This document shows positions 26,720 through 59,239 of a DNA stretch of 64,000 nucleotides, in pieces; position 1 is the first letter of the stretch, and each line of letters starts with the position of its first letter. The stretch is from Geosiphon pyriformis uo1 (Eukaryota; Fungi; Glomeromycota): NCBI GenBank assembly GCA_016748015.1, contig JAAOMT010000061.1, positions 268,433 through 332,432 of the forward strand, given 5' to 3'. The notes below the pieces were generated by a model. That model saw only the letters and a list, made by a program, of their open reading frames with translations. It searched no databases and was not told the DNA's origin. Both the position numbers and the translations under genes were made by a program.

Positions 26720-27590
26720 TTTTTTTTTTCTTTCTTTTAACGAGTGAAGTCCAAATACTACCTAGAACTATACATTATTTAAATGATCTAAACTAGGTAT
26801 GAATCATGCTTTTTCTACATGTGACCAGTCACTTAGACCAGTCAGAACAACACTATGTACTTATACCAACAGAAACTATGTCACTTATACCTGCAAAAAA
26901 TAAACAAGGCTTGCCATCAATCTTACTCCGCAAACTATCCATCACAACTCCAGAATTAGAGCCAACCTCCCAACATGTTCAATGAACAGACTGGAAAACA
27001 CCACAGACAAAACATCTTGAATTACTAGATATTGCAGTACCATCAGTCTTCAGAAAATGTTCACTGACTATATAGGGCAGCTGCCAAGAAGAAAAAACAG
27101 CATCTTTAGCAAGTGCATCAGCCCGCACATTGCCTAAGATACTCGAATAACCTTTAACTTTGATCCAATTCACATCCAAATTTTTCTGATGAATAATGTT
27201 AACAATATGGCAATGTTCAATCCAACACTGATTTTTGAAATCTGGACAAACCAACAGAGATTCAGACTTGCAAGCATCCAAAGCAGCCTGGTTGTCCGAA
27301 AACAAGTTAACTGAATGAAAAGAGGAGACACACTCAAGAGCCAAGGAGATGGTCTACAACTTTGCCATCATAGAAAAAACCATACCAGACATACTTACAT
27401 CCAAACCTGAATTAATGTCCTCAAAAAAAACAGCAGCACCAGCCTTTATATTATGAGTTCCTAAACCACTCAGAAACCCATCCATATACACAGAAAGGCA
27501 AGCTGCATCAACAACCAACAGATTGTTACAAACAATACCAAAACCACAAGATTAACAAACATCAAATAAGGCAGAACAAAGAGATCAAAC
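26720..27590 (-). mobile_element. Less-mutated, 5'-truncated LINE fragment: RNase H plus 3' UTR and A-tail
   Basis: Minus strand VYMDGFLSGLGTHNIKAGAAVFFED, then ORF 27344-26979 LFSDNQAALD...WIKVKGYSSILGNVRADALAK (RNase H). It joins directly to the terminal GKPCLFFAGISDIVSVGIST* and the 3' UTR; T-run at 26720-26738 on the + strand. Confidence 0.9.
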
Positions 27591-30563: not shown

Positions 30564-32818
30564 ATGTTTTTTATGTTTCGTGCCCAACGTAATGTGGTAA
30601 GTTTTTAAAGTATAAAAAAAATTCAATTTTTTGTATAATTTCTTTTAAGGAGTATTAATCTTTTTTTTTTTTACTTTTGAAATTGGTTTTTGTTAAATAA
30701 ATTTTTACCCAGTTCCAAGAGCCAAGAACATTTTATATAATACGAGTTATAACAGCGACAATAGTTTCTATGCTATATTTTTCTTACTTGATTTTTCTAG
30801 CATATCAAATATGGAACGATAGACCAGTGCTTCAACTTGCACGAGAACATGTTCGTCTCGTTAAAGCGCCAGGTATGAAAAACTTGAAGTTTTTTAAAAA
30901 AATTTCAATTTAAAAATATTTACTTAAAATCTTGATCTAAATATAATAGATTAACGAGAGGTATAATTCATTTTATAATTATAGATATTGAAATGTGTGG
31001 TTATGGTACCGACATAGAAATCGTACGATGTGACTTTACCTGGAAAAACTGGAGTAGCGTACAATACGATGACTGTGCTCGTCCAGATGGAACAACATGG
31101 CTTACAGCTGGTCCAAGGATAAACGATCACGATTTCTGTTACTTGTTTAGCGGAAGTGACAAATTATTCTATGGCGACAAGGATCAAAAAGGAGATTATT
31201 TGCAACGATTAGGATTTTATTTCCAGTTCAAGAATATAACAGCATCTAATAATTTAGTTGTCGCTGTTCCTATTGTGGCAGTAAGTAAATTTCTTTCGCA
31301 TTAGTTCGGGTTTTTGGATATTAAACGAGATGTAAAGTTTATACCTTTTAAATCTTAATATAGGCACAATTATTAGATCCTGATTTTAATCCACTTTGGA
31401 ATAAGACTAAAACGAATACTAGAGAGGTACGAATCTATAAAGTTTTTTAGTTTTATACGTTTTTTATCAAAAAAATTTGAGCTTTAAACTTTCATATATA
31501 TTCTAGAGGGTAGCTGCCGATACCGATTTCAGATTACAAGGAAATAATTTTGGTGGAGTTTTTAACCAGAGCACTCTTGTAAGTGAAATTAGTTTGAAAA
31601 TTTTCGGTTTGTCTATTTTCTTTCTCCTAAATTACTTTTTATTTCTATAGGTAAAAATGTTTGTCTCAAAATTACAAGAAATAAAACCACATGACTTTAG
31701 TAGTGTTTTAGGCTTAACACCCTCCTATATCAATACAACAATAATATCCCAAGCTGCCACCTATTATCCATTACATGAGAGTGAAAAATTTGGTCCTAAC
31801 CGCAATTATAGTGGATATTTTCAAGTGGAGATGGGGAGTTTTACAATTGAAGTGCAGACTCAGAAACGGTGAGTTTATGAAGAATTTTTTGCATCTTATA
31901 TGTGATGATTAATTTTAGCTAGATTAAAATTATAAATAAGTCAAGTCTTTTACTAATGCTCTTAATCTCAAATAGAGTAAGGACAATACTTGGAGCTCTT
32001 GGTGTTGCTGGTGGTGCTTTCGGTAAGTATAAATTCATATTGGGCTAGAAGTTGATTGCAACGATATTTTAGAAATCTATTTCACACAATCAATTTCAAA
32101 ACCAGGTATAATTTGCACAATATATTTTGTTCTATATGGCGATCGAAAAACACAACCTTGGTAATCTTCTTTCCCTATATAAATTTCGAGATATCACTTA
32201 TTATTTCCGTTTATTGACACTAACAAATATATTAATTATCTCAGGGGTCTAATGCATCGTATGGTGAAATCCGAAGTACGCCGTTTTGCACAAATGCCTA
32301 ATGTACCCTTGATATCCCCCCTTCACGAAAAGGCAAGTGAAGAACTAACACAAGAAGAACGAGTAGCGCGCATCGAAGACCGTTTTCAAGAATTAGAAGG
32401 CTTTTTATCGGATTACTTTATTGATACGGGACCGTTAAGACGTTTTAAGGATCAAGCAAAGGATGATCCAGAGTTAGCGCGGCGCNNNNNNNNNNNNNNN
32501 NNNNNGAGATATCACTTATTATTTCCGTTTATTGACACTAACAAATATATTAATTATCTCAGGGGTCTAATGCATCGTATGGTGAAATCCGAAGTACGCC
32601 GTTTTGCACAAATGCCTAATGTACCCTTGATATCCCCCCTTCACGAAAAGGCAAGTGAAGAACTAACACAAGAAGAACGAGTAGCGCGCATCGAAGACCG
32701 TTTTCAAGAATTAGAAGGCTTTTTATCGGATTACTTTATTGATACGGGACCGTTAAGACGTTTTAAGGATCAAGCAAAGGATGATCCAGAGTTAGCGCGG
32801 CGCTCTCCGTCTTATTAA
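30564..32818 (+). CDS. Two-TM membrane protein, paralog A (399 aa), PAC/DEG-ENaC-like topology
   Basis: Nine GT-AG exons: 30564-30596, 30713-30872, 30985-31280, 31364-31426, 31507-31578, 31651-31868, 31976-32022, 32106-32160, and 32245-32485 plus 32804-32818 (after collapsing the gap duplication). Total 1200 nt, open frame. TM1 VITATIVSMLYFSYLIFLAYQIW; TM2 ILGALGVAGGAFGIICTIYFVLYG; PWG motif; C-terminal coiled coil. Confidence 0.88.
32188..32803. other. Scaffold gap (20 N, 32486-32505) flanked by an apparently identical 298-bp duplication
   Basis: 32188-32485 equals 32506-32803 by eye; typical of an unmerged contig overlap. Confidence 0.9.
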
Positions 32819-33739
32819 TGATAATTTGTATAGTATGGGAAAAGGTATGAAGACGAGTATTCTTAGATTGTAAAGCTTGGGAGGCATTTCGGGAGGCGAA
32901 TGGATTGAGAACTTTTCTATTAATTTTGTGAATTTTCAAAAAAAACTCCCATTTCGAAACCTGCAGTGACTTACATTTCACTGTTATTTGTAATTTAATC
33001 AATTCTCAGCATTTCATTGTATGAATGAGAAAACTTCCAATGTGATGAAGTCGAGTTCGTTTAATTAATGTAGGCATTACTGTTCATATAGATGACTCGG
33101 GTTCTATACAATTACCAAAAATATTGTAAAATCTCAAATCATAAACTTCATGTGTTTAAACAAAAAAAAATTTTTAGGCCAAAAGCGTGCAAATAATTAT
33201 CGATATGCAATTTATCCCAAAAAAAGATATTGAGATTATCATTAAGTCCATAATTGACCTGATGTTTCCCCAGATTAAATAATTTATTTATGCAAAATTT
33301 ATATTGTATTTCAAATTTAAAAAATACTTTCGAAAAAGAATATAATTAAATAAATCATTAATTTCACAAAACCTTAATTAGAAACACAATATTAATTGAT
33401 TATCAAATTATTAATTTCACAATTTACTAATCATGACAATTGTGGATAGTTACAACTATTTTGAAAATTCAAATATTAAACCCATATTATTTTAAGTCTT
33501 TCAAAAAAATAGATTTTATTAGGAATTAGAACAAAGGTATTAAGAGTTATAAGATGGGAATTTTTTCTCAAATGTATATCAATCATAAAGGTGAATTAAC
33601 TTAAAAGAGATCATTTGTTTTTGTTCGGATCACTTTGACTCTTTGTATATTTAAGGTTAGATTTAAAATATATTAATATAAAATGACGTCATCTTTTTGT
33701 CATCTTAATATTCTTTGAATTATTCTAGATATCTGCTAA

Positions 33740-34140
33740 ACTCATTTATTATCCGACTGTTCTAGAGAATGAGTACCAAGGTACCTCTCACAGTTCTAAA
33801 TCAGTCTAGCATATTATGAATTAAAAATAGAGGTAGATAATTTAGAATGAACAAAAATCTTTTTTAAGTCGTTTACGACTATGAAATTGCGAATTCAAAC
33901 GCTATTTATAATCTCAGACTAAAAAACTCCATAAAAGCTTAAAATATGTTTTAAAATTATCATTTGCTTTATTTATGAATTTGAAAGTGAATATATTAAG
34001 ATTTTTAAAAGCCTTAAACCGTTGTTTCAACGTACAATTTGCATTTATATGCGAAGAAATAAGCAAAGATGGTTTTTATCCCTCGTTGCCCATCGAAATG
34101 TTGTAAGTTTTTAAAAATTAAGAAACCTATTTATAGATAT
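33740..34140 (+). pseudogene. Duplicated promoter plus orphan frameshifted exon 1 of the two-TM gene family
   Basis: 33752-34120 is homologous to 34164-34530. AAATAAGCAAAG-ATG GTT TTT ATC CCT CGT TGC...GTAAG at 34069 has 34 nt rather than 33, and no exon 2 follows. Confidence 0.65.
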
Positions 34141-34480
34141 TTGCTCTTTTAATCCATCTAATTATTCGACCATTCTAGGGAATGAGCACCAGGACACTTA
34201 CCCTCGCAGTTCTAAACCAGTCTGGTATTTTATGAATTAAAAATAGAAACTAATTTAGGACAAACAAAGTAATTTCATAGACGAAATTTTACTAAAAATT
34301 ACATAGTAGGTTAAATATGTTCAAAAGATATCGTTATCTTGGGGCTATAAATTTGAAGAGGAATGTATCAAGTGTTTTAAAAGCCTTGAACCGTTGTTTC
34401 AACATACGAATTGATATATTTTTGAGTTAAACTTATACTCCGAGAAAATATTGAAAAATCAAGTAAAGAAATAAGCAAAG

Positions 34481-35207
34481 ATGATTTATATCCCTCGTGC
34501 CCAACGGAAGGTTGTAAGTTTTTAAAAGTAAAAATCTTTCAATTACTTGTAGAATTTCTTTCAAGGAATGTTAATCATTTTTTTATTTTTTTGAAATTGG
34601 TTTTTATTATTAAATAAATTTTACCCAGTTCCAAGAGCATAGATTATTTTACATAACACGAATTATAATAGCAACGGTAGTTTCTATGATATATATCTCT
34701 TACTTGATTTTTCTAGCATATCAAATATGGAACGATAGACCAGTGCTTCAACTTGCACGAGAACATGTTCGTCTCGTTAAAGCGCCAGGTATGAAAAACT
34801 TGAAGTTTTTTAAAAAAATTTCAATTTAAAAATATTTACTTAAAATCTTGATCTAAATATAATAGATTAACGAGAGGTATAATTCATTTTATAATTATAG
34901 ATATTGAAATGTGTGGTTATGGTACCGACATAGAAATCGTACGAGATGTGTATAAGAGACAGTGATGAGATTGAATCCACGAGATTCTATACAGATTCAT
35001 AATGTACCCTTGATATCCCCCCTTCACGAAAAGGCAAGTGAAGAACTAACACAAGAAGAACGAGTAGCGCGCATCGAAGACCGTTTTCAAGAATTAGAAG
35101 GCTTTTTATCGGATTACTTTATTGATACGGGACCGTTAAGACGTTTTAAGGATCAAGCAAAGGATGATCCAGAGTTAGCGCGGCGCCCTTCGTCTTATTA
35201 CGGATAG
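34481..35207 (+). CDS. Two-TM protein paralog B, incompletely assembled (exons 1, 2, start of 3, then last exon)
   Basis: Exons 34481-34513, 34629-34788 and 34901-34943, then an adapter, then last-exon sequence 34963-35207. It has its own N-terminus (MIYIPRAQRKVFQEHRLFYITRII) and C-terminus (RRPSSYYG). Confidence 0.65.
34944..34962 (+). other. Tn5 mosaic end / Nextera adapter sequence (library artefact)
   Basis: Exact 19-mer AGATGTGTATAAGAGACAG sitting at the exon 3 to last-exon jump. Confidence 0.95.
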
Positions 35208-36424
35208 TTTGTATAGTATGGGAAATGGTATGAAGACGAGTATTCTTAGATTGTAAAGCTTGGGAGGCATTTCGGGAGGCGAATGGATTGAGAACTTTTC
35301 TATTAATTTTTGAATTTTCAAAAAAAATGTTAATTAATGTAGGCAGTACTGTTCAAAATCATAGACTTCATGTGTTTAAGATCGTCATTAAGTCCATTGT
35401 TAGGCTGATGCTTTCCCAGCCACATATTTAAATGTATGCGTTATGCTCTCTTAATTAAAGATGGCACCGCCACAATTAAAAGGTTGTAACTCTTAGTTCC
35501 AACCTAAAAAATTTCAACTGTCAGGAATTAATTTCCAACTTTTGGATGTTTTAAGTTTAAGAACAATATATATTGTATTTCAAATCTAACAAATACTTTC
35601 AAAAATAATATAATTAAATAAATTATTAAATTGCGCATAACTTTAATTAGAAACACAATATTAATTGATTATCAAATTATTAATTTTACTAACAAAAAAC
35701 AATTTACTAATTATGGCAATTCTGAATAGTTACAACTATTTTGAAAATCAAAAATAAAAGCAAAAGATCGGTTCCTTTATTGCCGATCATTCTCCATATT
35801 ATTTTCAGAAGGTACTAAGAGTTATAAAGTGGTTTTTTTTTCAAATGTATATCTTTTTCTATTTTTATATTATTGTTAGATTTATCAATCATAAAGGTGC
35901 ATTGACTAATCAAAAATCCAAATATTTATTTTCAAAAAAGAGTAAAAATGAGTGCACTCGAAAAAAAGAGACTATTTTGTATTATTCGGTGAATATGTTT
36001 TCACTTTGACTCTTTGTATAGATTTAAAATGTTGATATAAACCAACAGTCATCGTTTTTTTTTATTTTATGCTATTTCAATATTCTTTAACTGATTCAAA
36101 TATTTTTATTTAGCAGAAAACCTACTAATAGATATTTACCAAACTACTTTAATCTCTATGGATTGCACAAATGTTATTATTCGTCTATTCTAGGGAATGG
36201 GCGTTTCTGAGGGTAAGTAATTTATGACAAACAAAGGAAATCTTTTACGATTATCAAAAATTTCGAATTCACACGCCCCCCCCTTCGTAATCTCAGACAA
36301 AATGACATCGTTTTATTGTGGCTATAAACTTGAATGGAAATTTTAAACCGTTGTTTCAACGTACAATTTGTCCATATTTTAATCTAAACTTAATTTTAAA
36401 AATCAAGTGAAGAAATAAGCAAAG

Positions 36425-38329
36425 ATGGCTTTAATCCCTCGCGGTCACCGAAATCTTGTGAGTTTTAAAAATTAAAAATCCTTCAATTACTTGTATAATT
36501 TCTTTTAAGGAGTATTTTTTTACTTTTGAAATTGGTTTTTTTTAAATAAATTTTATCCAGTTCCAAGAGCCAAAAAAATTTTATATAACACGAGTTGTAA
36601 CAGCAGTGGTAGTTTCTATGCTATATTTCTCTTACTTGATTTTTCTAGCATATCAAATATGGAATGATAGACCAGTGCTTCAATTTGCACGAGAACATGT
36701 TCGTCTCGTTAAAGCGCCAGGTATGAAAAACTTGAAGTTTTTTAAAAAAATTTCAATTTGAAAATATTTACTTAAAATCTTAATCTAAATATATTAGATT
36801 AACGAGAGGTATAATTCATTTTATAATTATAGATATTGAAATGTGTGGTTATGGTACCGACATAGAAATCGTACGATGTGACTTTACCTGGAAAAACTGG
36901 AGTACCGTACCATTCGATAACTGTGCTCGTCCAGATGGAACAACATGGCTTACAGCTGGTCCAAGGATAAACGATCACGATTTCTGTTACTTGTTTAGCG
37001 GAAGTGACAAATTATTCTATGGCGACAATGATCAAAAAGGAGATTATTTGCAACGATTAGGATTTTATTTCCAGTTTAAGAATATGACAGGATCTGATAT
37101 TTTAACTAATACTATTCCTGTTGTGGCGGTAAGTAAATTCTTGCGTGTTAGTTTCGGGTTTTTGGATGTAAAAACGAGATGTAAAAGTTTATACCTTTTA
37201 AATCTTAATATAGGTACAATTGTTAGATCCTGATTTTAATCCACTTTGGAATAAGACTAAACCGAATACTCAAGAGGTACGAATCTATAAAGTTTTTGAG
37301 TTTCCTAAATTTTTTATCAAGAAATTTTAAGCTTTAAACTTTCATATATTTTCTAGAGGAAAGCTGTCGAGACCGATTTCAGATTACAAAGAAATAATTT
37401 TGGTGGAGTTTTTAACCAGAGCACTATTGTAAGTGAAATTAGTTTGGAAATTTTCGGTTTGTCTATTTTCTTTCTCCTAAATTTACTTTTTATTTCTATA
37501 GGTAAAAATGTTTGTCTCAAAATTACAAGAAATAAAACCACATGACATTAGTAGTGTTTTAGGCTTAACACCCTCCTATATCAATACAACAATAATATCC
37601 CGAGATGCTATCTATTATCCATTACATGAGAGTGAAAAATTTGGTCCTGAACGCAATTCTAGTGGATTTTTTCAAGTGGAGATGGGCAGTTTTACAATTG
37701 AAGTGCAGACTCAGAAACGGTGAGTTTATGACTAATTTTAGCCAGATAAAAATCATGGATAAAATGAAGTCTTTTACTAATGTTCTTAATGTCAAATAGA
37801 GTAAGGACAATCCTTGGAGCCCTTGGTATTGCTGGTGGTGCTTTTGGTATGTATTTCTTTGTATGAGTTTTGAGATTTAAATTAGATTTTACTGATTTTC
37901 TTACAACTAGGTATAATTTTCACCATATACTACATTTTATACGGTGATCGCAAATCAAGACCTTGGTAATGTTTTCCCGAACATGAATGTTTGGATTTGA
38001 TTTTGAAGTTTCCTAGTACTACAAGATATTTTTTTCTAAAATTTCTAATTTTTAACTGCAATAGGGGATTAATGCATCGCATGATGAGATTGAATCCACG
38101 AGATTCTATACAGATTCATAATGTACCCTTGATATCCCCCCTCTACGAAGCCTCAAGCCAAGAGCTAACGCAAGAAGAAAGAATAGCATGTGTTGAAGAC
38201 CGTATAGAAGGATTAGAAGGCTTATTATCGGAGTACTGTTTCGATACAACACAGTTAAAACGGCTTAGTGAGCGAATTAAAGACATTCAGCAGTCTCCAG
38301 CTAGTTTGAAAGATTTAGAGGCCAATTAA
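36425..38329 (+). CDS. Two-TM membrane protein, paralog C (402 aa)
   Basis: Nine exons: 36425-36457, 36561-36720, 36833-37128, 37214-37276, 37357-37428, 37502-37719, 37800-37846, 37911-37965, 38065-38329. Total 1209 nt, open frame, same intron positions as paralog A. Confidence 0.9.
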
Positions 38330-40129
38330 TATGTGGTAACTAACAAGTATTTACTTAAAATATTTAATTTCTATACTCATTTTTATCAGTTTCAAATGAA
38401 CCTAGACTTTAGTTCTCCAGAACCACATCTTTCAAAAAGTTTAACTTTCATACCAAAGAAATCCATTCACCAAGCTTCACTTATTTAAATGTTGCCTTAA
38501 TTGCCAGTCTTTGGTTTTTTTTGAATATTAAAATGTTTATTTTATTAAGGCAAAATAGTAAATATTATTTAGCAATGATCAAAATTGTAATTTGAAAATT
38601 TTTACGTGAATATAACATAGTATTATTAAATGATGGTAAATTTTTTAATAATATAATACCAATATTTTGTAAATTATAAATATCAATATATAATTTTGAA
38701 TATGGCTTTTAATAATAATTAAGAATATTGAAATAGGTTTAATAATATGTTTATTAATATTAATTAATTATTACTGATATTTTAAAAAATCATTTCACAG
38801 TTTTTATTATTTCTTAATAAAATTTTGTTTTTAAAAAAAAATTTTTTACTAGAATTTTTAATAAATGCAAAAAATTATTTCATTAATTTACTGTACTTTT
38901 TTTTATAAAAAAAAACAATTTTAAAGAATTTTTTACATATTTATTTTATAGCTATTGTTGAAAATAAGTTTATTTCAATTGTTTTTCCATTTATAATAAT
39001 AATAATGTTAAAATGATAATATATAAAATAATTTTTTTTTCAAATTATTTATCTAAAAGTAAAAGTTTTTTGCAATAATTCAATTCGGAAGTAAAAAAAA
39101 ATTTTCTGATAAAAACAGACAATTACGCTTTTTAAAATTTTCAAAGAAACATCTATTATCATCGTCGTGTTAAATTTCCTCATTCATCTTCTTAAAGCTA
39201 TTGAGCATGATCTAACTCAATAAAAATTATGTATCATATTTCTTGAAAATCCAATCAAAACATATCTATGAAAGTTTATTAATTTGGATTTCATATTTCA
39301 ATAAAACTTATTTAAATTAGATTAAAATCAAGGGAATATAATTTTTAATTGTTGAACAAATAAATTATATTCTTTAAAATATGTTATAAATATTAGCCCT
39401 CTTTGTAAATTGAATGAAATCATACTTTTTCGGAAATTTCCTTTCAAATTAGCATTGAAAAAATATTTTTATATATTCATTAATTTTCTTCGAGGTTTAA
39501 ATGGGATTCTCGACTAAGAGATTGATTATAAAAATTTATCCATCATAGATTCATTCTCATTTCGTCCCTAGCTTTAACATTTATTCACGATTTAAAGTTG
39601 AAATATCTGATAACAGATCTAATAGACAATCAATTTGATCCAATCTTGATTTCGAATAATTCATATTATTTCCGCAGTCAAAAACTTATGACTCATCAAA
39701 ACATAATCCGATGGGCGGATTTTAAAATTAAGTATATTTAGTTTCTATCTCAAAATCTATTCCCTGTATTTTCATTAACTGCGGTTAATGAAAATGTTAA
39801 ATAAATTGAACGTCGATTTGACAAGGAAACCCAAAAAATTCTTTTGTTTTCTCTTGATAAAATTAGACATATCACGTGATTACTTAAAATTCATCTAATT
39901 TTTAAATGCCCCCCATTCAAGGTAGAAAAGCTGTTACAAAACCCATTTGTCGTGAAGAAATACTAAATGACTATATAACCATAACACAATTGAACCGAAT
40001 GAATAGAAAGGAATTACAAGGTATGATTGCTTTTTCAATATGGAAATAAATTTAAAAGTAAAAAATTTCAGGTTCCAGTTAATGAACTTTCCTTTGAAAG
40101 GAAGCATATATTCATAATTTTTACTACCT

Positions 40130-40820
40130 TGATACAAACTTTAGGTTTAGCAGGTCGTTTTGGACTCCAAACTTGGGGTAATCGGTGGTTGTTATTGGGT
40201 CGTTTAAGGTATATTTCAAAAAGCCTTTAGAAAGTATTATTTAATATAAAATCCTGTGATTTCAACATTTCAAAATACTATTCATTAAAGGGATTATATG
40301 TTTACCGATAAGCATAATAATTGCTGTAAACTCGAGAAGACAAACTCGAAACAGGCCAGAGTGCTTGAATGGGCTGAATTTTTATTGGATATGTCGGTCG
40401 CTTCGTGAGTTTAATTGATAAATCTGATAAAGAGAATCAAAATATGGAAATAATTTTATTTAAAAAATTCTTATCTCAAGGTTTTTAACCTTTTGGAAAG
40501 AATATTATTCTTTTCTGCCAATTGCCGATGCATTTCTTGAGGCAGATGTGAAAATGAGGTATTTTATTAGAAATATTTAGTTCTTTAATGTTCAAGATAT
40601 TTTTTTTAATTAATACTTTCCTTTAGAAATAGACAAGTTAAAGGCTCTTCAATTAAGATGTCCTTAAGTTATATTCTTAATTAAAGTCAAGGTTAAGTTT
40701 TCGGTAAGATTATTTTTTCATTTTAATATCCTATCATAAGGGACTCTTTTTGACGGGGGTGTTTGGCAGGATTTTATGACGTCTTTACTAGGTTTAAGAT
40801 CTTTAATTTGGGATGGGTAA
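40130..40820 (+). pseudogene. Possible multi-exon gene remnant of unknown family
   Basis: GC-richer blocks bounded by AG/GT: GLAGRFGLQTWGNRWLLLGRL, DYMFTDKHNN...LEWAEFLLDMSVAS, FLTFWKEYYSFLPIADAFLEAD, DGGVWQDFMTSLLG. No complete model could be built. Confidence 0.3.
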
Positions 40821-42084
40821 AACTTTTCATTTTAAAGACTTTTAAGTTTGATTTTTTAAAAATCAAGATTTTCAGAAATTGCCAAATATTGGTATAAATA
40901 TCAAATTTTTACCAAAATTAACTTGCACAAAGTTATTTCTATAATGAAGCCTTTAGTTTTTATCGGGTATCTCTCTAAATGCACTATACTACACATTGAA
41001 AAGAATAAATTCGAAAGAGAATAAATAGTGATTTAGTTTGATTTAAAAAAATCTCATTGGAGTTTCATAAACCTTTTTATCAATCATCCCTGAAATATTT
41101 TGTCCTATAAAATTGAAATAATTATAAATATATTATAAAAATATAAATTTTAATTAGAAAATTTTTTTGGTAGGTCTAATTTTGCGAGTTCACACATGTA
41201 CAGTATATCCAAAACCCTTTGATTGAGATATGAAACGAGAAATGGTGGAAATGTCTGAAAATTTAACGTTTAAGAAGTTAAATATTTTTAAAGAGTGTAA
41301 AAAGAAAAAATAATTTTTGAGCAATTTTTACAAAAAAAAAAAACTCAAACTTTTAAAAAAAATTGTCCCGTCATTTTAAAGAAGTAGACCAGTAAATAAA
41401 ACGAAAAATTGTACAATATATATATATATATATATTTTTTGTATAATTAGAAAATTATTTGTGAATTACATAATAAAAACAAGAATTCCACCAAAATTAA
41501 AAGCTCAGCATCTTTTATTTTATTCATTATTTATTTTTAATTATTTTTCTTATTAAAAAAAAAAGGTGATTAAAAAATATTTTTAAACCAACTTCATATC
41601 AAAAAAGTACAATTAATATTAAAAAAATCAATTAATTACTTGGCGTTATACAATAATTCTTTAAGAAATCCCAAATTTAATTTTTTAGACATAGGATGAA
41701 TTGGTTGAGTACCTTTATGCCAATGTTTACCATGTTTTGAAATTAATGGTAATATTTTTAAAAATGGGTTTTAATTTTTTTTATTAAAATAAACAATCTT
41801 TAAATCTTTGTATCTATTTTTTTTTGACATTCATAAATTAATTTAACTTTTAAATCTTTAAAGATTGATTTTTAATATTTTTTGTAACATTTTGTTTACT
41901 TGATAAAAATATAACAGAATTTTAGATTATTAAAATTGTAAATTAAAATAAATTATATGCATTCAAAAAAAAATATATTTCATAAAATTAAATTAATTAA
42001 TTAATTATTTACTATTTTAAATTTTGATACTTAGTAAATAATATTAAAAGAATTAAAACTTTCTATTTTCTTAATTTTATAACC

Positions 42085-42700
42085 ATGACCAGAGCAAAGA
42101 GTAAAAAAGAAACAAACCACCACTTTTTTTACAAAATATTGAAAAAGTGTTTTTTTTTAATTATTACAAATACAAAACAGTTTTTAGTTGTTTTAATAAC
42201 ATCATTTTTTCTTTTTTTGTTAAAAATTCTTTTTTAGTCAAAATTTTATTAAATCAACACATCAAAACCAGTTCTAATGTTGGCATTGCCATCACAAAAA
42301 GTCTCAAAATTTTTAACAAGCTAGTAATAAAGTAACTGTTTTGTTTTGAAAAATAGAGCTTTGGGTTTTTTGTTTAATATTAATTTTTTTATTAATTCTG
42401 TTTTATTACTACTAACAACAATATTGTTTTTTTTTAATTTAACAACAGCAATAATAAATTTATTAATATAAAATACAAATAACTATTAATACTTTAAAAG
42501 ATTGTATTTGGTAAAAAAAAATTAAATATATACTGTTATAAGTATTAAAATTCAAATTATTTTATTGGTAAATTAAATACAAAAAAACCATTTTTGATGT
42601 TTAATTTAGTTTAATATATAAAATTAATATAAGTTTAATTAACTAATTACATATAAAAAAACACATAAATAATATATTATTATAAACATATATATAGTAA
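42085..42700 (+). mobile_element. Decayed LINE ORF1-like remnant
   Basis: Starts MTRAKSKK; 42535-42590 (VISIKIQII...QKT) resembles ORF1 at 7380-7425; CpG-free and AT-rich. Confidence 0.4.
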
Positions 42701-43940
42701 ATATATACATAAATAATAAAAGAAATGTATTTATTTATTTAAATCCAATTAATAAATAAAAACTTGTTTTTTTTTTAATTTTTACAATTATATTTAAATC
42801 AAAAAGTAAAACATAAAAACAACTGCTAGTTTTTTTTATAGCAATTAAAAATATCAAGATTCAAATAAGTTTTTTTAAAACATAAAAATAACTAAATAAA
42901 ATATTGTAAAAATTATTTCTTTAAAAATTGCTTAAAACTTTAATTTTTTATTAAAAACATTAATTATAATAATTTGTTCCAATCTAATTATAAACAAACT
43001 TTTTTTTTAATTTAAATAATAATAATAATTATAATATATTTATTAAGATAAATACAGATTAATAAATAATTAGATTACTTAAATACTATTATTTTTTAAC
43101 AAATTATTATTGATTGTAAAAGCAAAACAAGTTTATATTTTAATATAAAATTTTATCTAATTATATTATAAAACAGTTTTTTTTTATAAATATTTTTAAT
43201 TTTAATAATGTTTTTAAAATTATTAATGATTAATAAAAATATTTTATAAGTAAGTAGTTTTTACTTTAATATTTCATGTTTTTTTTTTCAAATTTATCTA
43301 TTGTTTATTTAAAAATTGTATTTTAAGTTAATTACCAAGAATAATATTTATGTTTTTCTGTATAAAATTTATATTTCAAAATTTTTTGAATGCTATTATT
43401 AAAATTTAATTTATTGATTTTCTATTTTTTACTACTTTTAAAATAATTTTTTTATTAGCTATTAAGAATAAGTTTACTATAAAAATATAAAACAAATATG
43501 TGTAACAATTTTTTTAAAATTGTTGGTTATAAATAATTTTTCCTGGTAATGAAACCTAAATAATAATAATAACCAAAATTATTATTTTGAGTTTGAAATA
43601 AGTATTAGAACCTTTTTTTTTATACTAAAAAAATATTATAATTTAAAACTTGATATATTTTTATATCTCTCGTGTATATTTTTGAAATTAAAGATTAAAA
43701 TTTTCTTTGTATCTCGCTTAAATATTTAAAAATTTTCAAATTTATATAAAAGAAATGTTCTAACTGTAATAATAGGAATATTAATAGAGAATTTATTAGA
43801 ACCTGTCATATAAAAAATTTTCTTTTGATCTTTATAATCATAAGAAAATCGTTACCATTTATCCTTAGGCCAGCTGTAAACCATATTATTTCTTGTAGAC
43901 GAGGATAGTTGTCTAATTGTGATATCATAATTATTTAGAT

Positions 43941-44070
43941 TTATTTCGTTGTGTTATCTTAAATCACCTAACTTTCTTTGGTAATGTTACCCTAAATTAT
44001 CTAACTTTCTTTCTTTGTATTCTCCTAAATTAGCTAACTTTCTTTCGTTGTGTTATCCTAAATTATCAAC
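43941..44070. repeat. 33-bp degenerate tandem repeat, ~4 copies
   Basis: CTAACTTT recurs at 43968, 44001 and 44034; unit ~CTTTCGTTGTGTTATCCTAAATTATCTAACTTT. Confidence 0.85.
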
Positions 44071-44585
44071 CTCTGTTTTAATAAAAAATTTCGAACTTTG
44101 TTAAAATCTACACACAAGTTTCACGGTGCTCATAATATTTGCATCTTTATATTTTTGGGAAATTCAATGAGATGAAAGGAATTTAGCTAAAATACTGTAA
44201 TTCTTGGGAAAATATTTATTAATAGATTTCTTTTACTAAATAAAAACTTTTGAATAATTTAAAGAATATTAAATAATATGAAATTAAAAAACGGTAGCCA
44301 TAAATACACTATAGTAGTAATTTAAATCTGACTTTAAATATATATCCTAAAGAATTAGAATGAACCCAAAAAAGGGAGATAGTTACTTTTTTTTTTAAAT
44401 ATTTGAATTAATAATAATAAGCTCATTTATTTTTATAATTCCACTGAATTAGTTAGGGGTATTAAAGAATTAAAATAAAACCTTAAAATACTAAAGGGTT
44501 AAATCATAATTACTAAATTCTTTATATAAACCCCAGCTACTAAGGTAAGAACATTTTATCTCATAAGCTTTAATCTTATGAATAA

Positions 44586-46395
44586 ATGGCTCTTTTAAAG
44601 GTTATAAACTTTCTTTGTTGAATTCTAGAAAAAAAAATTTTTCAAGATCTCTCACACGCGTTTGAATTTTTATATACATGAATAATTATCGAAACCCAGA
44701 AATCTAGTCATTTAAGAACGATCTTTGGGATCTTGATCACACTTCTTTTGTTTTTGTACTTGGGCTTTTTGATTTTTATCATCAATAACGATAAGCCAGT
44801 CATTGAAATAGAGCAAACTCAATTAGAGAGAATAAAAGCACCCAGTAATTTTAACTTTTTATTTGAAAATTTGATTTCGGATTATACCCATACTTAAAAA
44901 TAGTTATTTTCTATCAAATTTTAACGCAGATATTGAAATATGTGGCTGGGGAAGCGATCTTTATATAAAACGTTGTGACTTCACTTACAATGATGAATCT
45001 ATAGACGAAAACATCAATTGCACTAGCAATACAGGCGTTAATTATATCACACTCTCAGATGAAGATAAAAGAGGACCTCCTAATTATTGTTATCTATTCA
45101 CCACAAACAATACACTATATTTCTCTAACTCTATAAAATATATGAAGGATCTAAAAAAGATTGGGATTTATTTCAAGTTTTTAAATGTAAGCGGAGCTGA
45201 GACCTTGTCACGTAATGTTGCTAATGCTGGTAAGCAAATAGGATATGAGTTAATTTTACAGTTTGATGAGCATTTCTAATATTATTTCTCATTTTATCCG
45301 CTATTTAAAGCCGTTCAATTAATGCATCCTGAATTTAACTCTCTTTGGTATCACGCACCTATGAGAAATGAAATGGTATAGTTGTATTCGTTCGTTCGTT
45401 CGTTCATTCGTTCGTTCGTTCATTCGTTCGTTCGTTCATTCGTTCGTTCGTTCGTTTATTTGTTTGTTTGCCTTTCTATTAATAATAATAATAATATCAT
45501 ATTTAATATGTAGGATCGAGCCCAATTCGAAAGTTTACGACTTCAAGATAACAATTTTGCCGTTACACGAAATTACTCGACTATGATTAAATTCAAACAA
45601 TTGACCTTTAAAACTATTCGAAAAAGAAATATTGCTGAAATATTTGGGCTTCAACCAGAATATGATGATACCATCTCTTTTCCAGCCAGTGGTCAACTTC
45701 TTCCATTACACACCAATCCTAATTTTACAGCTGAAGATTCATATTTTTCATTTGGTGTTGGCAGTTATTCGCATCGCGTGGAAAAACAGAAACGGTAACT
45801 AATGAAAATTAATTTTAAATTTGTGTTTTACTAAACTAGTAAATAGTTTATCTTCTCTTACTGAATATCAAATTTTTTTTCAGTATTCGTACAATTTTAA
45901 ATACTTTTGGTCTTGCTGGCGGGGCGTTTAGTATGTTCTTATTAAATCTTTAAAACTCGTTCCTAATGAAATATTTGTAGTAGTAATTTTAAACATTATA
46001 TTTTTAATATCATAGGTCTTGCAGGGGCCTTGTACGTTTTTCTGTTTGGAGGCAGTAAAGTAAAGCCTTGGTAAATATTTCTAGGGATAGTTTTTATTTG
46101 ATTTAGTCCCACGATACTAACGTCTGCTTTTTGTAATAGGGGTGTTATGGATAAATATTTTGACTATCAAGTTAAGGAAATTGTTAAAAAGTTTGAACAA
46201 ATACCATTAGTAGGAAATAAACGTCACGACTATGACCTGGGAGATGCTGAAAATTTTCAACAGAAAGAGACGTACGAGGATAGAATGAACCAACTCGAGA
46301 AGCGACATGACGATTTAGAAGAATTTTTAAGTTCTTATTTTTTAGATATAACTCATTTAATGCGAAAGAGAAGTTGTGACGATGAGATAAATTAA
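44586..46395 (+). CDS. Two-TM membrane protein, divergent paralog D (~387 aa; start uncertain)
   Basis: Exons 44586-44600 (tentative, MALLK), 44700-44844, 44930-45229, 45311-45375, 45514-45794, 45884-45930, 46016-46070, 46140-46395; phases are consistent. Shares NDKPV...KAPNIEICG, RCDFT, CYLF, RLQDNNF, QKRIRTIL...GLAGGAF, PWG and LEEFLSSYFLD with A and C. Confidence 0.85.
45387..45456. repeat. (TTCG)n intronic microsatellite
   Basis: About 17 tetramer copies with TTCA variants, in an intron of paralog D. Confidence 0.95.
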
Positions 46396-47250: not shown

Positions 47251-48880
47251 TTATTCAGTTTCATATCCTTGAAAACCAAATTCTCCAAAACCTCGACAAT
47301 CACCCATAATTGTACGAAAATAAGGACCACGATGTATAGCGTCATGTGGAGTATCAAAGAAACTTTGACCGACATTACATTCCTATTTTAAATACAAAAA
47401 ATATTTTCATTATTTGAAATTTATAATAATTGATAATTAATAATTTCATATATAAAAAATTTACCGGATTTTCACCAGATCCCCCAAACCAAGGCAGTGA
47501 AAGGTAATCAGTTCTTTTAGAAGGTAGTTCGTTGTCATAGAACTCATAACTAGTACGTAATTTCTTTCCACGACATAAATAATATTCTACAGTTTCGTTA
47601 TTATCTTCACAATCACAATTATCTCCAATTGGTTTAATCCATATTTCTGTTTCAAAATGTTCCATAATAGTTTTATTGTTAAATGGTTTTTTAACAGTGA
47701 AATGAGGAACATGATCGTTTCCATATGTTACTCGAATGTTCGTTTTATAATGGGTATTAACAAGTCGTGCAAAATTTTGATTCCCAACCCTCGGGGCGCC
47801 AAATGTTATTACACGAAATGGAAAAAGTGTATATAATCTTGCCTTTACGTTTTTTTGTCGAAAAATGTTCCATAATTCAGCGGCTAATATTGCGTACGCT
47901 AAAAATCGAATAATTTTTTTTTTTTTTTTTTTAAAGATATATACAGATACAGATAAGCATTATTCATTTTAAAATTTAAAATTTATTATTATTTAAACAA
48001 ACCTCCACCGATAGCGTGACCAATAAAATAGATCTCATGAACATAGAAATCATTATGTCTTTTTTTAATGATTTCGGAAATTTGACTGATAATAAATGGC
48101 CACATTTTTTCAACATCTTGGAACCATTCTTCATCTACCAAAATTGAAGGGTTAGGTTTTTGTCCTAAATAAGTGAATTCAACAAGTTTTGCTTTTCTTG
48201 AAATCCAATCGGCTTTTGTTAATGTCTAGAATATTTTTAAATGAAAATATTTTCTGTTAAAAAATAGGGACTAATTTCAAAAATTAATATATGATAGATA
48301 ATTTTTTCTAATTATGAATTACCTTTCCTTTAAAATAAATTGTAATAGCTGCATTTGATCCTTTTCGTTTCGGTTCCGCAACATAATATCCTAAATGTGC
48401 TTTAAAAAATTAAGAAAATATTATAAAAATAAATTTTTAGATTTTGTATAAAAATTTTAAAAAATTGAATAAAAAAATTATAAATTATAAATTTTATTAT
48501 AAAATACCTATTACATCTTCTTTTTTAACTACTCTTCCAATAATATTTTTATTAGGCATGCAGTAACCATGATTTGCTATAAATGCAATAATAGGTAAAT
48601 TCAAAAGTATTTCTGAATCAGGTGAAATTTTTTCTTTTCTTATGATACTTGATTTAGGAAAAAAATTTTTTTTAGAAATTTGAGAAAAATTCTTTGTATA
48701 AAAAATGTGATTTGAAATATTATATTGAGAATTTTGAATATATGTTTTAATTTTTAAAGAAATAAATTCTAAATTTAAAAGTGAAACTTTAAAATAATTT
48801 ATACAAAAAAAAAGAACTATAAATTCTAATAAAAATCCTATCAAGAAAATTGGAAATTTTAATTTTTGCGCAGGATTCAT
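47251..48880 (-). CDS. Lipase class 3-fold (alpha/beta hydrolase) protein, 412 aa, nucleophile Ser replaced by Ala
   Basis: Five exons: 48880-48508, 48399-48323, 48225-48003, 47898-47465, 47382-47251; 1239 nt, open. N-terminal hydrophobic anchor or signal; IYFIGHAIGGAYA, VITFGAPRVGNQNFA, RVTYGNDHVPH, HFETEIW, ENPECN, HRGPYF. Confidence 0.9.
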
Positions 48881-51391: not shown

Positions 51392-52659
51392 ATGAGGATC
51401 TTTAAATTTTCTTGGTAAAAGTCGGAAAATTTCTTTTCACTCTAAAATAAATTTGACAATAAATAAATTAAATATTATCTTTCATTATTGTCCAGCTTTA
51501 ACGCTAGCCGTCTTTTAGATACAAATAATAGTACCAAAAAAAGGAGTCAAAGAGGTTCCAGGAAGTCTTCATATTCATTAGCTCAGCGATCGGAAAATGA
51601 AAGGGTTTGTTCCACGCTTCCCCACTCATCTTTTACGGTGGATTCAATAGGAAGAGAAGCTCTCAATCCTCGAAACTCAATATTTGGCACCCCAATTAAT
51701 CTTGCCGAACAAGATCGTCTACAAACTCAACATTTTCTTCTAAAGTATGTTTGGGGTTCCAATTTCTCGTCTCCAGTGACTCAAATCTTGGAGTTTGGAG
51801 GTGCCAAGGTTCTTGATGTCGGGTCTGTTGAATATTTTCTTCAATTCAAATTTCAACAAAACTAAGAATAATCAAAATCATTTATAACTTTAATATTCTT
51901 ACATTCTTTTGTTTAAGTTGTGGTCCTGGAACATGGTGCTTAGATATGGCTACCGATTATGAAAGTTCTGAATTTTTTGGTATCGACATATCACCTTTAT
52001 TTCCATCCCATATAAAACCACCAAATACAACATTTTTACTTGCTGATATTCTCTCGGGGCTTCCTTTCCAAGACAATTATTTCGACTTCATTTATTTGCG
52101 TAACATGTCTCTGGAATTCACAGTCAAACAATGCAAAGAAATTGTTATTCCGGAGTTAACAAGAATTGTAAAACCAGGTGGATTCATCGAATGCATGGAC
52201 TATTGCTTTCCTAAAAATTTTGGTCCCACTTCCAAGATCATTTTTGATCTTTGTATGTGAAATTTAAATACCTATTACGTTCTGAAAATTTGTGTGACAC
52301 AACCTATTTTTTAATACAATCTCTCAGTTTATATTAAACCAGGGGCTGATGAACTAGTTGCAAGAAAATTTGATCCAAACATGGACAATCAATTCTTCGA
52401 CTTGTTATCTTCGCAACCAAACATTATTGATATAAAGAAAGAATATCGTGCTATTCCACTTGGCAACTGGGGTAAAATGAATGGTCGAATGGCTTTGAAT
52501 GATGTAATTCAACTTTTACAATTAATTGGCCCATCAATAAGCCTTTCTGGAAGAAATCTTGAAAATTTTCTTGAAGAATTTAAAAAGGAATGCGAATTGT
52601 ATAAACATGAAAATACTTCCTATCGCATTTTTGCCATAAAGCATAGGAATACAATTTGA
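51392..52659 (+). CDS. Class I SAM-dependent methyltransferase (LaeA-like fungal family), 333 aa
   Basis: Four exons: 51392-51414, 51496-51822, 51918-52252, 52343-52659; 1002 nt, open. Motifs EQDRLQTQHFL, NFSSPV, motif I VLDVGCGPGTW, FFGIDISP, GLPFQDNYFDFI, ELTRIVKPGGFIE, IPLGNWG. Confidence 0.92.
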
Positions 52660-54431: not shown

Positions 54432-57400
54432 TAAATCAATAATCTCATGAAAATAGAACCAAAATCAACATTCATTCAATCAACTCTGAATTTTTGTTCC
54501 TAGAAACGACTCTGTTAAAGGATCTATCGGCGATTCGGACGATGATACCGGTATTTGTCAATGGTTGAATTATATAAAATTAGTATTGAAAATTCTTTTT
54601 TCTTAATTATAATGGTAAATCGGCACCATAATTCATAAAAAACAGAAAACTTAAGATTGGAGTCTTTGGCTTATATTTCAAATTAGTAAAACCCGATTCT
54701 AAAATTTTTCATATGATTATTTAACCCTTAATAATGACCATGAAGGTAAAAGTAATACACACTACCACCAAATCGTATTTGAGTCTTATACTGATTTAAA
54801 ATTTACAAACTATTTTTGTACTTTTAATACTTTGAGGATAAACACTTTATTATCTTTTTTTATATTTGATTAATCATAAAATTAATGGAAATATTAATGA
54901 AAACTACTTTGTAATTTATTTATAAAAAACTATTATTGAATAAGCAATTATTAGTTTAACTTAAAAATTATATATTCAATCCAAAATGCTTTTGGAGAAA
55001 CTGTGGTAGATTTGTTTAATCTCACCAATTCTGTAGTTGAAAAAAATGCACAAATAATAATAATTATGTTTTTTAGACTTGATATTTATAATATTGTTTT
55101 ATGTTCAGAATTTTTTGCTAATTAAAGTTAATAGTTTTGTAACTGATTCTTTTATTTTTTATTTTACAATAATTTATTTGGTTTTTTTCTTATATTTTTA
55201 ATTTAATTTTTTTATGTTTGTTCAATTCTTATTTTTTACTTTTTATTTTACAAAAAACTTTAAAATTAATATACATTTACAATAAATTTTAATTATAAAA
55301 TTATTATTTTTTCTTATAAATTATTAATTAGTAATAAATCACAAAAGTCAAATTCCATTTAATTTCAAGATTTATTAAACAAAAGTTTTGACTTGGTTAT
55401 TAACAAATACATTATAGATGTAAAAATCTTTATTTTGAGTTGATCAAAAATTAATAGGTATAAAAAACATTAAACAAGTTAAATAAAATAAAACAAAAAT
55501 AAAGATATATTATAATCGTTCAAATTGAATAAGATTCTCAAACATAAATAATTTTAATTAAAGTTATTTAATTTTTAAAATTTTGATATTAATTAATGTT
55601 TCTCTAAAAAAAAATTGAATTAATTAATCTTGATTTTTGCCTTTTGCCTTTTGCCTAAAATTTATTAAATAAAAACTCAATATTTAGTTACATCTTAATT
55701 TTTAAAAAATATCAGTAAAAATATTGTTCAACTTATTTGAGTCTTATAAATAAATTTAATATCAAATTATTTACCTTTATTATATAACGTTATATTTGGT
55801 TTTATGTAAAAATTGAAAAGTCTTAAATATGTGACTTGAGTTATAATCTGATCAATTATGATTTTGAAACATGACTAACTTTTGAAATTTTCATTAATAA
55901 TTTTAACAAAAAATAATTATAAATTTTATATTATTTAAAGAATATGTATAATTTTAACACAAAAATTTAAAATATATTTAAATTTATTAAGTAAATCAAT
56001 TTGGATTAAAAAAAAATATATTAATTAAAATATATTAACAAATTTTTATGTTGAAAGTAAAATAATCTATTAATAAGTTTGAACTTTAAAACATATAATT
56101 GCAATTGTTACCATTTGTAATATTGTACCATTTTTTTATTTGCCTCAGTTCTTTTATTATTTTTTAATTAAATTATTATTTCTTCCAATTACACTATCTT
56201 TTTTTCCTATCAATAATATTGTTCAATAAAAAACAATTTATTACCACATCAATGTTTATTTTATTTATAAATAATAATTATTCTTAAATAAAACGGGTTT
56301 TAAATTTTTTGAAACATTATAAAAGTCAAAAATAAATTTAATCTATTTTAAAAGAATAGAAAATCTTTGGATTAAATACCAAAATTTAAATGGGTGTTAA
56401 ATCAAATTATAATTTCAACAGAGTAATAATTCTAAGCATATTAACAGTCTTATTTCTTTTTTCTGGAAAGAATAATTCCCAAATTTATGTATTAGCAATC
56501 TAATAGTTTAAACTTTGAATTTTATTGAAAATTTGAAGTATTTTTAAAAATAATGTAAAAAATAAATACACTAAAAATCTTAATAAACTGGAAAATATTT
56601 CATAGATAATTTTAATTAATCGTGCAAGATCAATAAAAATAATAATGTAAACTTGCTATTGATTTTCGACTATCAACAATTTATTGCTTATGTACATTAA
56701 AATGTGGCAATCAATTTTCTAATTTCAGTATTTTTTGTGCTAAGTTGTATTTATATATTAATACTTTTTCTTTGATAAAAAATAAAACTAAGTATCACTT
56801 AAACCGATATCCAAAAAAAGGGAGCTCAAAAATTGGTTAACAATGTTACATAAGATGGAAAAAAAATTATTTATATTTATTCTTAAGTCCTTGGGTTTGC
56901 TGACAGATCTTAATTCTTATTTAAATAAAAATAGAAACTACATTAAATGATATTTATTTTAAAAATTATATTTATTTACTTTTGGTCGCATATAATTCTT
57001 CAATGGCGAGATATTCGAATCTCACCATTTTTTCGTGCTCAGTTTTTTTTTTGCGAACACGCTTAGGTAATTTTTGGACCCCAATTTTAGGCCACTTTAG
57101 AATAAGATCAAAACAGATATTTGAGAAGTACAAATCCAAAAATGCACAAAGTTTCAAATTTTTTTAATTTTTGAGTTTTCATATATTTTCCGGGGAAGGC
57201 TATTAACACCGATCTCAGATTATAAAGAAAAATTATGGTGAAATTCAACCAAACCACTATTCTAAAAGAAATTAACTTGAAAATTTTCAAATTTCAAATT
57301 TCAAATTTCCTTATATTTAATTATTATTATTTTTGAGTAAAAAATTCCAAGAAATAAAATCACAAGACTTCATGGTGTTTTATGTCTGACATTTTATAGC

Positions 57401-59239
57401 ATAATAATTTATTACATTTAAATGATAAATTTCTTCGTAATAATAATTGTAATTGATATTTTAAAGTCAAAAAAAGTAGTCTTATAATCGAAATTCAGAC
57501 TAAGTAACAATTATTTTATGTGCATTTTTTATCATATTAAGCTTTAAAATAAACTTCATTTATGACAATTTACAATAATGTTTTTAACCAATTTTATTTT
57601 GACTTTTATAATTTTGACATGATTATGAATTACCAATTATTTTAGTCACAACAAAATAAATGAAAAAAATGTCACTTCTATTTTGACTAAAAAACCAGCA
57701 AATGAAAAAAGAATTGCGATTTTGAATAAACCTGTAAGGAAATCCTACATATATTAATAACAACATTGGATAAGTTGGAGAACAATTAAAAAGTTAAAAA
57801 AGTTTACATCTTCAAAAAAGGTAGTTGTAAACACAATAAAGAAAGTATAAAGCTTTAAAGCTGCAGCTATTATAGAAATCAAAATTAAATTAATTTTTTT
57901 TTAATTTAAATAACATCATTATATATTTAAAAACTTGCAACCAATATCTTAAAAATTTGCAAAAAGTTTTTAGTCTTTGATAAAATATTGAACTTAAAAT
58001 TATTATTTTTTGTACAACAGTACTTTCAAAAACAATGTCTTATTCAAATTTAAACACAAAAATTTATATTTTTTGATTACTTTATTTTTAATAATTATAT
58101 ATTAAATAAGAAATTATATTGATGTTTTATTGTGTCTCCGTTTAATTTAAACGTTTTTTACGAATTCGAATTGGATTTCAAAATTTTTTTTATAAATATC
58201 CATCAGAAAATATCTTTCAATGGAATAACACAATAAAAATTTGGATCAATTTAAAATTTCACTTATGAATTAATAGCTGGAAAAAAACAAAAAATTGTGT
58301 TAGTATCATAATAATATGATCTTACCCTTTATTCATAAATTTAAAACACTACATGTCTTTAAAAAATATGCTTTCAATCTGGTAGTATTGAAATAATAAG
58401 CCTTGAATACAATAAATTGTTTTTGATCATTACTTCAATCAACTTAAATACCCAATACACAAAAAAAATTGACATATATTTTTTTATAAATAATACAAAA
58501 TATTATAAAACTAAAAAATTGAATACTTTTTGAATATTTGAATTTATTTTCTTTTTCCAAATATAACATTTTACACATAAACGATTGATCAAAGTCTTAT
58601 TTATAATTTGTTATTGTTAGTCAATTATCAACATAATTTTTGCTAAAATTAAATTGAGCTCTAATTTTATGTTTAGTTTTTCTACTATTTCAGATACAAT
58701 TGTATTTTCTGCTACTGCTTGAAATTCTGTAACCTGAGTTACAATTCAAAGCTGTTGGGATTGTGCAGACATATTTTCTTCTTCTAAATCTTCTAGTAAT
58801 ATTCATGATCATAAACTTGTAAATTTTACTCTTAATAATAATAATGAATTTACAGAACTTATTTATCAATTTTTCGGAAACTTTTCATTCTTTAATTCTA
58901 ATAGAATATATTCAAATTAATAATCAAATGATAAGTGACATATGATGAAATCACTCAATTTGTGACTAGTAAGAAGCAATAACAAATGTTTTAAGAGTTG
59001 AAAAATAATACGGTTTTTACAACAAGATAATAATGTAGATATGGACTTTGAAGCTATGAAGATATTAAATATTTTGAAATCATTGTATCATCCGCAAAAT
59101 TCATTAAAATTTATATATTACGTTGATGATTGAAAATAAAAAATAAATCAATTAAATCAAGCTCCATAAAAACCAGACATGATTTATTTATTTCTTGTGT
59201 TAAATAATTTACATAGTAGCGAATATGGCATTTATTCTA

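Follow-up and report, generated by a model that had tools for sequence, protein, structure and literature searches.

The question raised by a stretch of 64,000 nucleotides from Geosiphon pyriformis uo1 (contig JAAOMT010000061.1, positions 268,433 to 332,432; the whole stretch is called the window below) is what kind of proteins are encoded by a group of related genes, named A to D, at window positions 30564 to 46395. The original prediction read them as a cluster of four genes for putative ion channels with two transmembrane (TM) segments, resembling PAC (TMEM206) or DEG/ENaC. Three of the genes (A, C, and D) are complete, while the fourth, B, is interrupted by an adapter. The gene structure, the topology, the beta-rich ectodomain, and the likeness of the fold to PAC and then to ASIC/ENaC are computed results. 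We consider it likely that A, C, and D are subunits of a Mucoromycota two-TM family with the PAC/DEG-ENaC core fold, which would form gated trimeric channels sensing the extracellular or luminal medium.

Gene models and the fungal family

The window DNA is AT-rich, rich in introns, and fungal, and all copies of the family described here lie on its + strand. Gene A (30564-32818) has nine exons and a stop-free frame (30564-30596, 30713-30872, 30985-31280, 31364-31426, 31507-31578, 31651-31868, 31976-32022, 32106-32160, and 32245-32485 plus 32804-32818, with an assembly duplicate collapsed in the last). TM1 (30734-30811, about residues 19-44) has a conserved Arg at its cytosolic start and is followed by Asp-x-Pro. 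The bulk of the beta-rich extracellular domain is encoded by exons 3-6 (30985-31868), with four conserved Cys, C69/C80/C95/C116 (codons at 30996, 31029, 31074, and 31137), and six N-glycosylation sequons, exactly the six that had been listed before. TM2 (31983-32137, about residues 284-307, within a hydrophobic segment at about 284-309) is split by intron 7, is uncharged, and carries a Gly/Ala stripe. The cytosolic tail (32138-32818) contains a basic linker, the PWG motif, a short helix, and a C-terminal amphipathic helix that may form a coiled coil.

The segment 32486-32803 within gene A consists of 20 N and an exact repeat of 298 bp. The right flank of the N-gap (32486-32505), at 32506-32803, is identical over 298 bases to the left flank at 32188-32485, and the gap is therefore an unmerged assembly overlap that leaves gene A undamaged. 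With the duplicate collapsed, there is a single last exon, whose frame is open to the stop codon at 32816-32818. The exact duplicate rules out both a 188-amino-acid open reading frame through the Ns and a doubled tail.

Gene C (36425-38329) also has nine exons (36425-36457, 36561-36720, 36833-37128, 37214-37276, 37357-37428, 37502-37719, 37800-37846, 37911-37965, and 38065-38329), and its product is 78% identical to that of A. Gene D (about 44586-46395) has exons at 44586-44600 (tentative), 44700-44844, 44930-45229, 45311-45375, 45514-45794, 45884-45930, 46016-46070, and 46140-46395; its product is 35% identical to that of A and is the sister of Geosiphon P0001. A stretch of D at 44637-44657 is in frame and resembles the Geosiphon first exon, but it lacks an ATG and runs into a stop.

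In a script check of the hand-placed exons, A, C, and D have GT-AG introns only and no internal stops, and encode 399, 402, and about 387 amino acids, respectively. Each has two hydrophobic segments, a Gly-rich TM2, the PWG motif, a C-terminal amphipathic helix, four loop Cys (C58/C69/C84/C107 in D), and five or six sequons, so that the earlier description of two-TM proteins with a large loop, four Cys, and PWG is borne out by the spliced frames and their hydropathy. The joined models were built from the window coordinates and used for frame, hydropathy, pairwise identity, and the search for further copies in the window, while database searches with window sequences used single exons. A family profile made of relatives only, with no window sequences, matches all exons past exon 1 of A, C, and D in collinear order (E-values of 1e-5 to 1e-30 for the large exons, weak scores for the short ones), exon 1 being below the cut-off of 14 amino acids. 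All eight introns of A and C are identical in codon and phase to those of the Ambispora leptoticha gene for the relative P0030. Gene D has a shifted, phase-1 third intron and lacks the fifth intron, which is the pattern of the Geosiphon P0001 gene.

When the exon 3 sequences of A, C, and D are combined into a profile, 29 matches are obtained, 28 of them family members, and after three more searches the family comprises about 110 proteins. The named relatives all come from Glomeromycota (Ambispora, Geosiphon, Paraglomus, Entrophospora, Gigasporaceae, Acaulospora, Rhizophagus, Glomus) or Mucorales (Phycomyces, Mucor, Rhizopus, Lichtheimia, Cunninghamella, and others), the closest being those of Ambispora and Geosiphon, and they are annotated as hypothetical or uncharacterised only. 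By itself, this affinity would most likely place the window in a Glomeromycota genome near the Archaeosporales. None of the named ones among the approximately 110 relatives is from outside the Mucoromycota, although the limited reach of the searches does not prove absence elsewhere. Pfam gives no match for nine window exons and none above cut-off for 15 and for 79 relatives. Introns are conserved among members across Glomeromycota and Mucorales. In an exon-3 tree of low resolution (101 columns), D and Geosiphon P0001 are sisters (99/94), as are A and C (100/100), and A, C, and D fall within a Glomeromycota clade (100/98). Judged from the sequences, the split between A and D is old, and A, B, and C represent a recent tandem expansion.

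The Mucorales species sampled have mostly one or two copies. Entrophospora sp. SA101 (L003:1-20030) has at least three near-identical copies in an array and an inverted partial copy; two of its tandem proteins, P0040 and P0045 (640-670 amino acids), look like fused gene predictions. Two distant relatives, P0070 and P0071 (E about 2e-16), have the TM2-PWG region and the C-terminal helix in common with the family and lack the four-Cys pattern; given these two, the superfamily in Mucoromycota fungi may be much larger.

Predicted fold and links to PAC and DEG/ENaC

The structural results were obtained for P0030, a natural relative about 44% identical to A and with the same intron positions, which was modelled by AlphaFold2 as a monomer, without templates, from 79 alignment rows. 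The model has a predicted local distance difference test score (pLDDT) of 88.9 and a predicted template-modelling score (pTM) of 0.75. It consists of TM1 (residues 16-45), a beta domain with short helices (50-278), and TM2 (283-305), with a short helix and a C-terminal helix on the cytosolic side. In a Foldseek search of the PDB with the full-length model, PAC/TMEM206 occupies ranks 1-19 (E 1.3e-12 to 3e-10; template-modelling score 0.47-0.59 by target; identity 11-14%), and the rest of the top 50 is DEG/ENaC (E 1.6e-9 to 4e-8), bar one further PAC entry.

To exclude that the match was due to the membrane helices, the ectodomain (238 amino acids) was also folded alone, giving a pLDDT of 95.0 and a pTM of 0.89. 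PAC is again found at ranks 1-18 (best E 8.6e-10; query template-modelling score 0.50-0.57), in nearly gap-free alignments of 239-254 columns, followed by ASIC/ENaC with long gaps (0.47-0.58), and the top 50 are all PAC, ASIC, or ENaC. The fungal ectodomain is compact like that of PAC, with a helical insertion of about PAC size, only short helices, and no thumb or finger. At the level of the fold, the proposed likeness to PAC/ENaC is supported by both models.

At the sequence level, 177,635 sequences of the PDB were searched with a profile of the TM1-beta2 region, and the top six matches are all PAC (E 0.0014-0.067). These E-values are somewhat favourable, because the profile was trimmed after the whole-family profile had given a weak PAC match there. 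In this alignment, the fungal Asp47, Pro49, Pro64, and Cys80 correspond to D91, P99, P114, and C128 of PAC, as counted from the printed alignment. Whole-family profiles reach PAC at E 1.0 and 0.54 only; a match to the YadA coiled coil was dismissed as chance. Profiles of the C-terminal part of the ectodomain and of TM2 give no sequence match. The Pfam ASC family (PF00858) appears below threshold in three of 79 rows (best E 0.0025; 17.4 bits against a cut-off of 23.6), in matches that span only TM1 and the post-TM1 motif, which are also the region where an ENaC-like motif had been pointed out. The PAC family of Pfam (PF15122) stays below cut-off, with a best E of 0.19 in one of the 79 relatives and no match for the window exons. 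Of three PAC segments that the original prediction had aligned, the first is reproduced with the real human sequence, while the second and third have no sequence-level match and are supported by the fold only.

The likeness to PAC and ENaC might be the product of convergence or of modelling, with an unrelated beta-sandwich between two helices. The identity of just 7-14%, the C-terminal half devoid of sequence matches, and the lack of any Pfam family above cut-off are in line with such a view. However, the template-free models reach a pLDDT of 89-95, the ectodomain by itself retrieves nothing but PAC, ASIC, and ENaC in the top 50, and an independent sequence profile also ranks PAC first. We therefore consider an artefact very improbable.

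PAC (also ASOR; gene PACC1; PDB 7jna, 7sqg, 8h8d, 9hqn) has in common with the fungal family the two TMs, an ectodomain that is compact, rich in beta strands, and provided with a small helical insertion, a collinear TM1-beta1-beta2 region with common Asp, Pro, Pro, and Cys, and probably Gly at the TM2 crossing. The fungal proteins differ from PAC in that they lack the TM2 lysine and have four loop Cys, about six sequons, a conserved PWG helix, and a C-terminal helix. They also form a multigene family with tandem arrays, in fungi, whereas TMEM206 is a single gene without a family, whose reported orthologues are vertebrate and hemichordate (PMC6663466). DEG/ENaC/ASIC channels (PDB 9e4c, 5wku, 8ymr, 9jf7, 6bqn) resemble the fungal family in the core beta domain, which in PAC and ASIC has 12 strands (PMC7904269), in the two-TM layout, in a weakly matching profile region that covers TM1 and the Pro-x-x-x-x-Cys motif behind it, and in being multigene, so that heterotrimers are possible. 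However, the fungal ectodomain (200-242 amino acids) has no room for the DEG/ENaC thumb and finger, and the alignments need about 100-200 extra columns.

P2X receptors, which are trimeric and reported in early-diverging fungi, likewise have two TMs and a large ectodomain, and had been named among the candidate likenesses. The fungal family differs in having only four loop Cys, and P2X is absent from the top 50 PDB matches of the full-length and the ectodomain models, so that P2X membership is rejected. A viral fold library gives nothing credible, its sole P2X match being viral with a template-modelling score of 0.15. The original prediction was to fall if no profile or structural match to PAC, ENaC, or P2X folds appeared, and it is the matches to PAC and DEG/ENaC that were obtained.

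TM2, conserved residues, and the proposed function

TM2 of the family has Gly, Ala, or Ser at 76-100% at positions 285, 286, 288, 290, 291, 292, and 295. The Gly-Gly in its middle is conserved in 100% and 97% and is a candidate equivalent of the crossing glycine of PAC (G312/G313), which lies in a hydrophobic gate. The TM2 helices of PAC cross at Gly, G313 (PMC7904269), and a stripe of small residues is what would be expected if the fungal helices crossed in the same way. No counterpart of the PAC filter lysine (K319 in human, K320 in pufferfish) is present in any TM2 register, and TM2 of A, C, and D has no charge. In PAC this lysine is essential for current and selectivity, and the K319E substitution turns the channel cation-selective (PMC7904269). 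G-x-S occurs in seven of 70 relatives and is absent from TM2 of A, C, and D. The TM2 filter of DEG/ENaC is the GAS (G/S-x-S) motif, and these channels also carry an HG motif before TM1, which is found in three of 40 fungal N-tails and not in A, C, or D. A Cys-rich thumb is absent too, as are finger and knuckle domains: 54 of 66 ectodomains have exactly four Cys within the 200-242 amino acids, and these four are conserved at 97-100%. With the PAC lysine, GAS, HG, and the Cys-rich thumb all missing and Pfam below cut-off, the fungal proteins are neither PAC nor DEG/ENaC and should be filed as a separate, third family of the PAC/DEG-ENaC superfamily.

One may instead regard them as true PAC counterparts, proton-gated and chloride-selective, in which basic residues at the cytosolic mouth take over the role of the TM2 lysine. 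PAC is the best match by both structure and sequence, and K/R is conserved in 98% at the start of TM1 and in 95% right after TM2. However, a residue that is essential in PAC has no counterpart in the fungal TM2, and the proton-sensor positions are not clearly retained, which makes this reading rather unlikely. The uncharged TM2 rather points to a pore that is probably weakly selective or cation-permeable and that does not have a PAC-type chloride filter, although an anion preference is possible given the conserved Arg/Lys at the cytosolic mouth.

In a channel of the kind proposed here, both termini would be cytosolic, the ectodomain would be glycosylated, and its four Cys would pair as two disulfides, as suggested by the fold family. 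Three subunits would assemble, possibly as A/B/C heterotrimers. By analogy with the PAC and ASIC structures (PMC7904269, PMC8809534), the TM2 helices would be arranged around the axis and cross at the Gly stripe, forming a hydrophobic gate. Displaced by the stimulus, the first and the last beta strand would then pull on TM1 and TM2 and open the pore.

As to the stimulus, acid pH is our first, tentative guess, because the family conserves acids on the strands near the membrane, the last strand among them (D47, E67, D/E273, and E277, in P0030 numbering), like the carboxylate pairs of ASOR; D222 is conserved as well. The proton-sensor acids of PAC/ASOR are E107, E249, E250, E257, D289, and D297 (PMC8809534). 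The column equivalent to E107 is variable in the fungal family, and the column beside it is 72% acidic. This variability, together with a Gln at position 277 in A, C, and D, makes a ligand or a mechanical stimulus nearly as likely; taken singly, a small ligand is a somewhat doubtful candidate, and force acting through a wall-tethered ectodomain an unlikely one.

The same fold could also belong to a non-conducting surface trimer, a receptor or scaffold signalling through the PWG helix and the C-terminal helix, with an ectodomain diversified among tandem copies for self/non-self or microbe recognition. The TM2 without a selectivity motif, the conserved cytosolic elements, and the tandem arrays in the window and in Entrophospora favour such a role, as does the divergence of A and C. 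Their ectodomain exons (30987-31866 and 36835-37717) have 33.5 non-synonymous against 6.5 synonymous differences, while introns 3-5 are 89-99% identical. Overall, the ratio of non-synonymous to synonymous rates (dN/dS) is 0.61; for the ectodomain it is about 1.3 (40 differences, small counts). The excess in the ectodomain (proportions of 0.065 for non-synonymous and 0.050 for synonymous differences) is, however, not significant with counts this small, and most of the Mucorales species sampled yielded one or two copies. Moreover, TM2 has a near-invariant Gly stripe, as is typical of helices that cross in a pore, and the top 50 structural relatives are all channels. We regard a non-conducting receptor as quite unlikely; the A/C pattern is compatible, on these sequences, with gene conversion and relaxed or diversifying selection.

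Several points nevertheless weigh against A, C, and D being gated trimeric channels. The trimer, conduction, ion, and stimulus are suggested by the fold family, the models being monomers, and the predicted fold is that of the relative P0030 rather than of the spliced A, C, and D themselves. The identity to PAC is 11-14%, with root-mean-square deviations of 6-8 Å. K/R occurs in TM2 in only three of 70 rows, and G-A/S-S in none of the 70. Just before TM2, at approximately 31863-31865 (A), 37714-37716 (C), and 45789-45791 (D), the window proteins have Gln where 96% of the relatives have E277, and the column of ASOR E107 is occupied by His in A and C and by Gln in D. Finally, recent purifying selection on the A/C pair appears weak, as indicated by the overall dN/dS.

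Copy B, neighbouring features, and significance

The 5' part of copy B (34481-34943; exons 34481-34513, 34629-34788, and 34901-34943) encodes 78 amino acids. Its exon 1 is distinct (76% identical to A, 67% to C), and over its final 245 bases the identity to A is 100%. It ends at a 19-mer (34944-34962, + strand), which we take to be the Tn5 mosaic end used in Nextera libraries and which has one match in the window, with 0 expected by chance. This junction bypasses the middle of B and leads into a last-exon part (34963-35207) with 28 nucleotides identical to C and then 195 nucleotides 98.5% identical to A. Copy B has an exon 1, an upstream region, and a stop codon of its own, and is otherwise composed of tracts resembling A and C in mosaic fashion. 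It probably represents a genuine third paralogue of the A/C type, the middle of which was left out of the assembly through an untrimmed read. The adapter at the junction rules out an intact gene or a natural short isoform. An untrimmed mosaic end in the assembly also means that further joins in the genome may be chimeric. Two remnants complete the set: an orphan copy of exon 1 (34067-34100) with a one-base insertion, an intact donor site, and no exon 2 after it, and, at 57064-57505, the decayed exons 4-6 of a gene like A and C, with 67-69% DNA identity over 57064-57382 and no open frame.

A Lipase-3-like gene lies on the - strand at 47516-48222, 1.1 kb downstream of D, and is 34-41% identical to two Lipase_3 genes beside the Geosiphon P0001 gene (L002); the presence of such genes at both places indicates local synteny. 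The P0001 model itself (L002:10001-11785) omits two TM2 exons that are present in the DNA (11294-11338 and 11431-11490), a probable annotation error. Elsewhere in the window are a spliced gene for an S-adenosylmethionine-dependent methyltransferase (51488-52659; Methyltransf_25/11), retroelement relics with fragments of reverse transcriptase-RNase H and RNase H (2293-2631 and 26979-27344), and a tandem array at 62535-64000 (98-bp unit, about 15 copies, 88% matches, GC 44%) that extends beyond the window end.

According to published work, PAC is an orphan channel that belongs to no gene family (PMC6663466), and it resembles DEG/ENaC without discernible sequence homology (PMC7904269). A BLAST survey by Elkhatib et al. 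that included Fungi found no DEG/ENaC there, its candidates being limited to holozoans, one alveolate, and one stramenopile (PMC10507113). In the full-text literature searched, mostly without subscription journals, we found no fungal PAC- or DEG/ENaC-like proteins; priority is uncertain, as structure-cluster databases may already group the fungal family with PAC. We see even chances that the fungal proteins are a third, fungal branch of the superfamily, minimal trimeric channels that are proton- or ligand-gated, have a new selectivity mechanism, and preserve traces of both PAC and ENaC in their N-terminal sequence, so that the fold predates the animal-fungal split and PAC and DEG/ENaC are homologous rather than convergent.

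With a fungal family that has the PAC/ENaC core and is weakly linked by sequence to both, the origin of the superfamily becomes testable; the family also offers natural variants without either of the known selectivity filters. It is, in addition, a candidate for the sensing of pH or of ligands by arbuscular mycorrhizal fungi and by the genetically tractable Mucorales (Mucor, Phycomyces), where few such channels are known. If the proposal is correct, mycorrhizal and mucoralean fungi would possess a previously unrecognised extracellular sensor.

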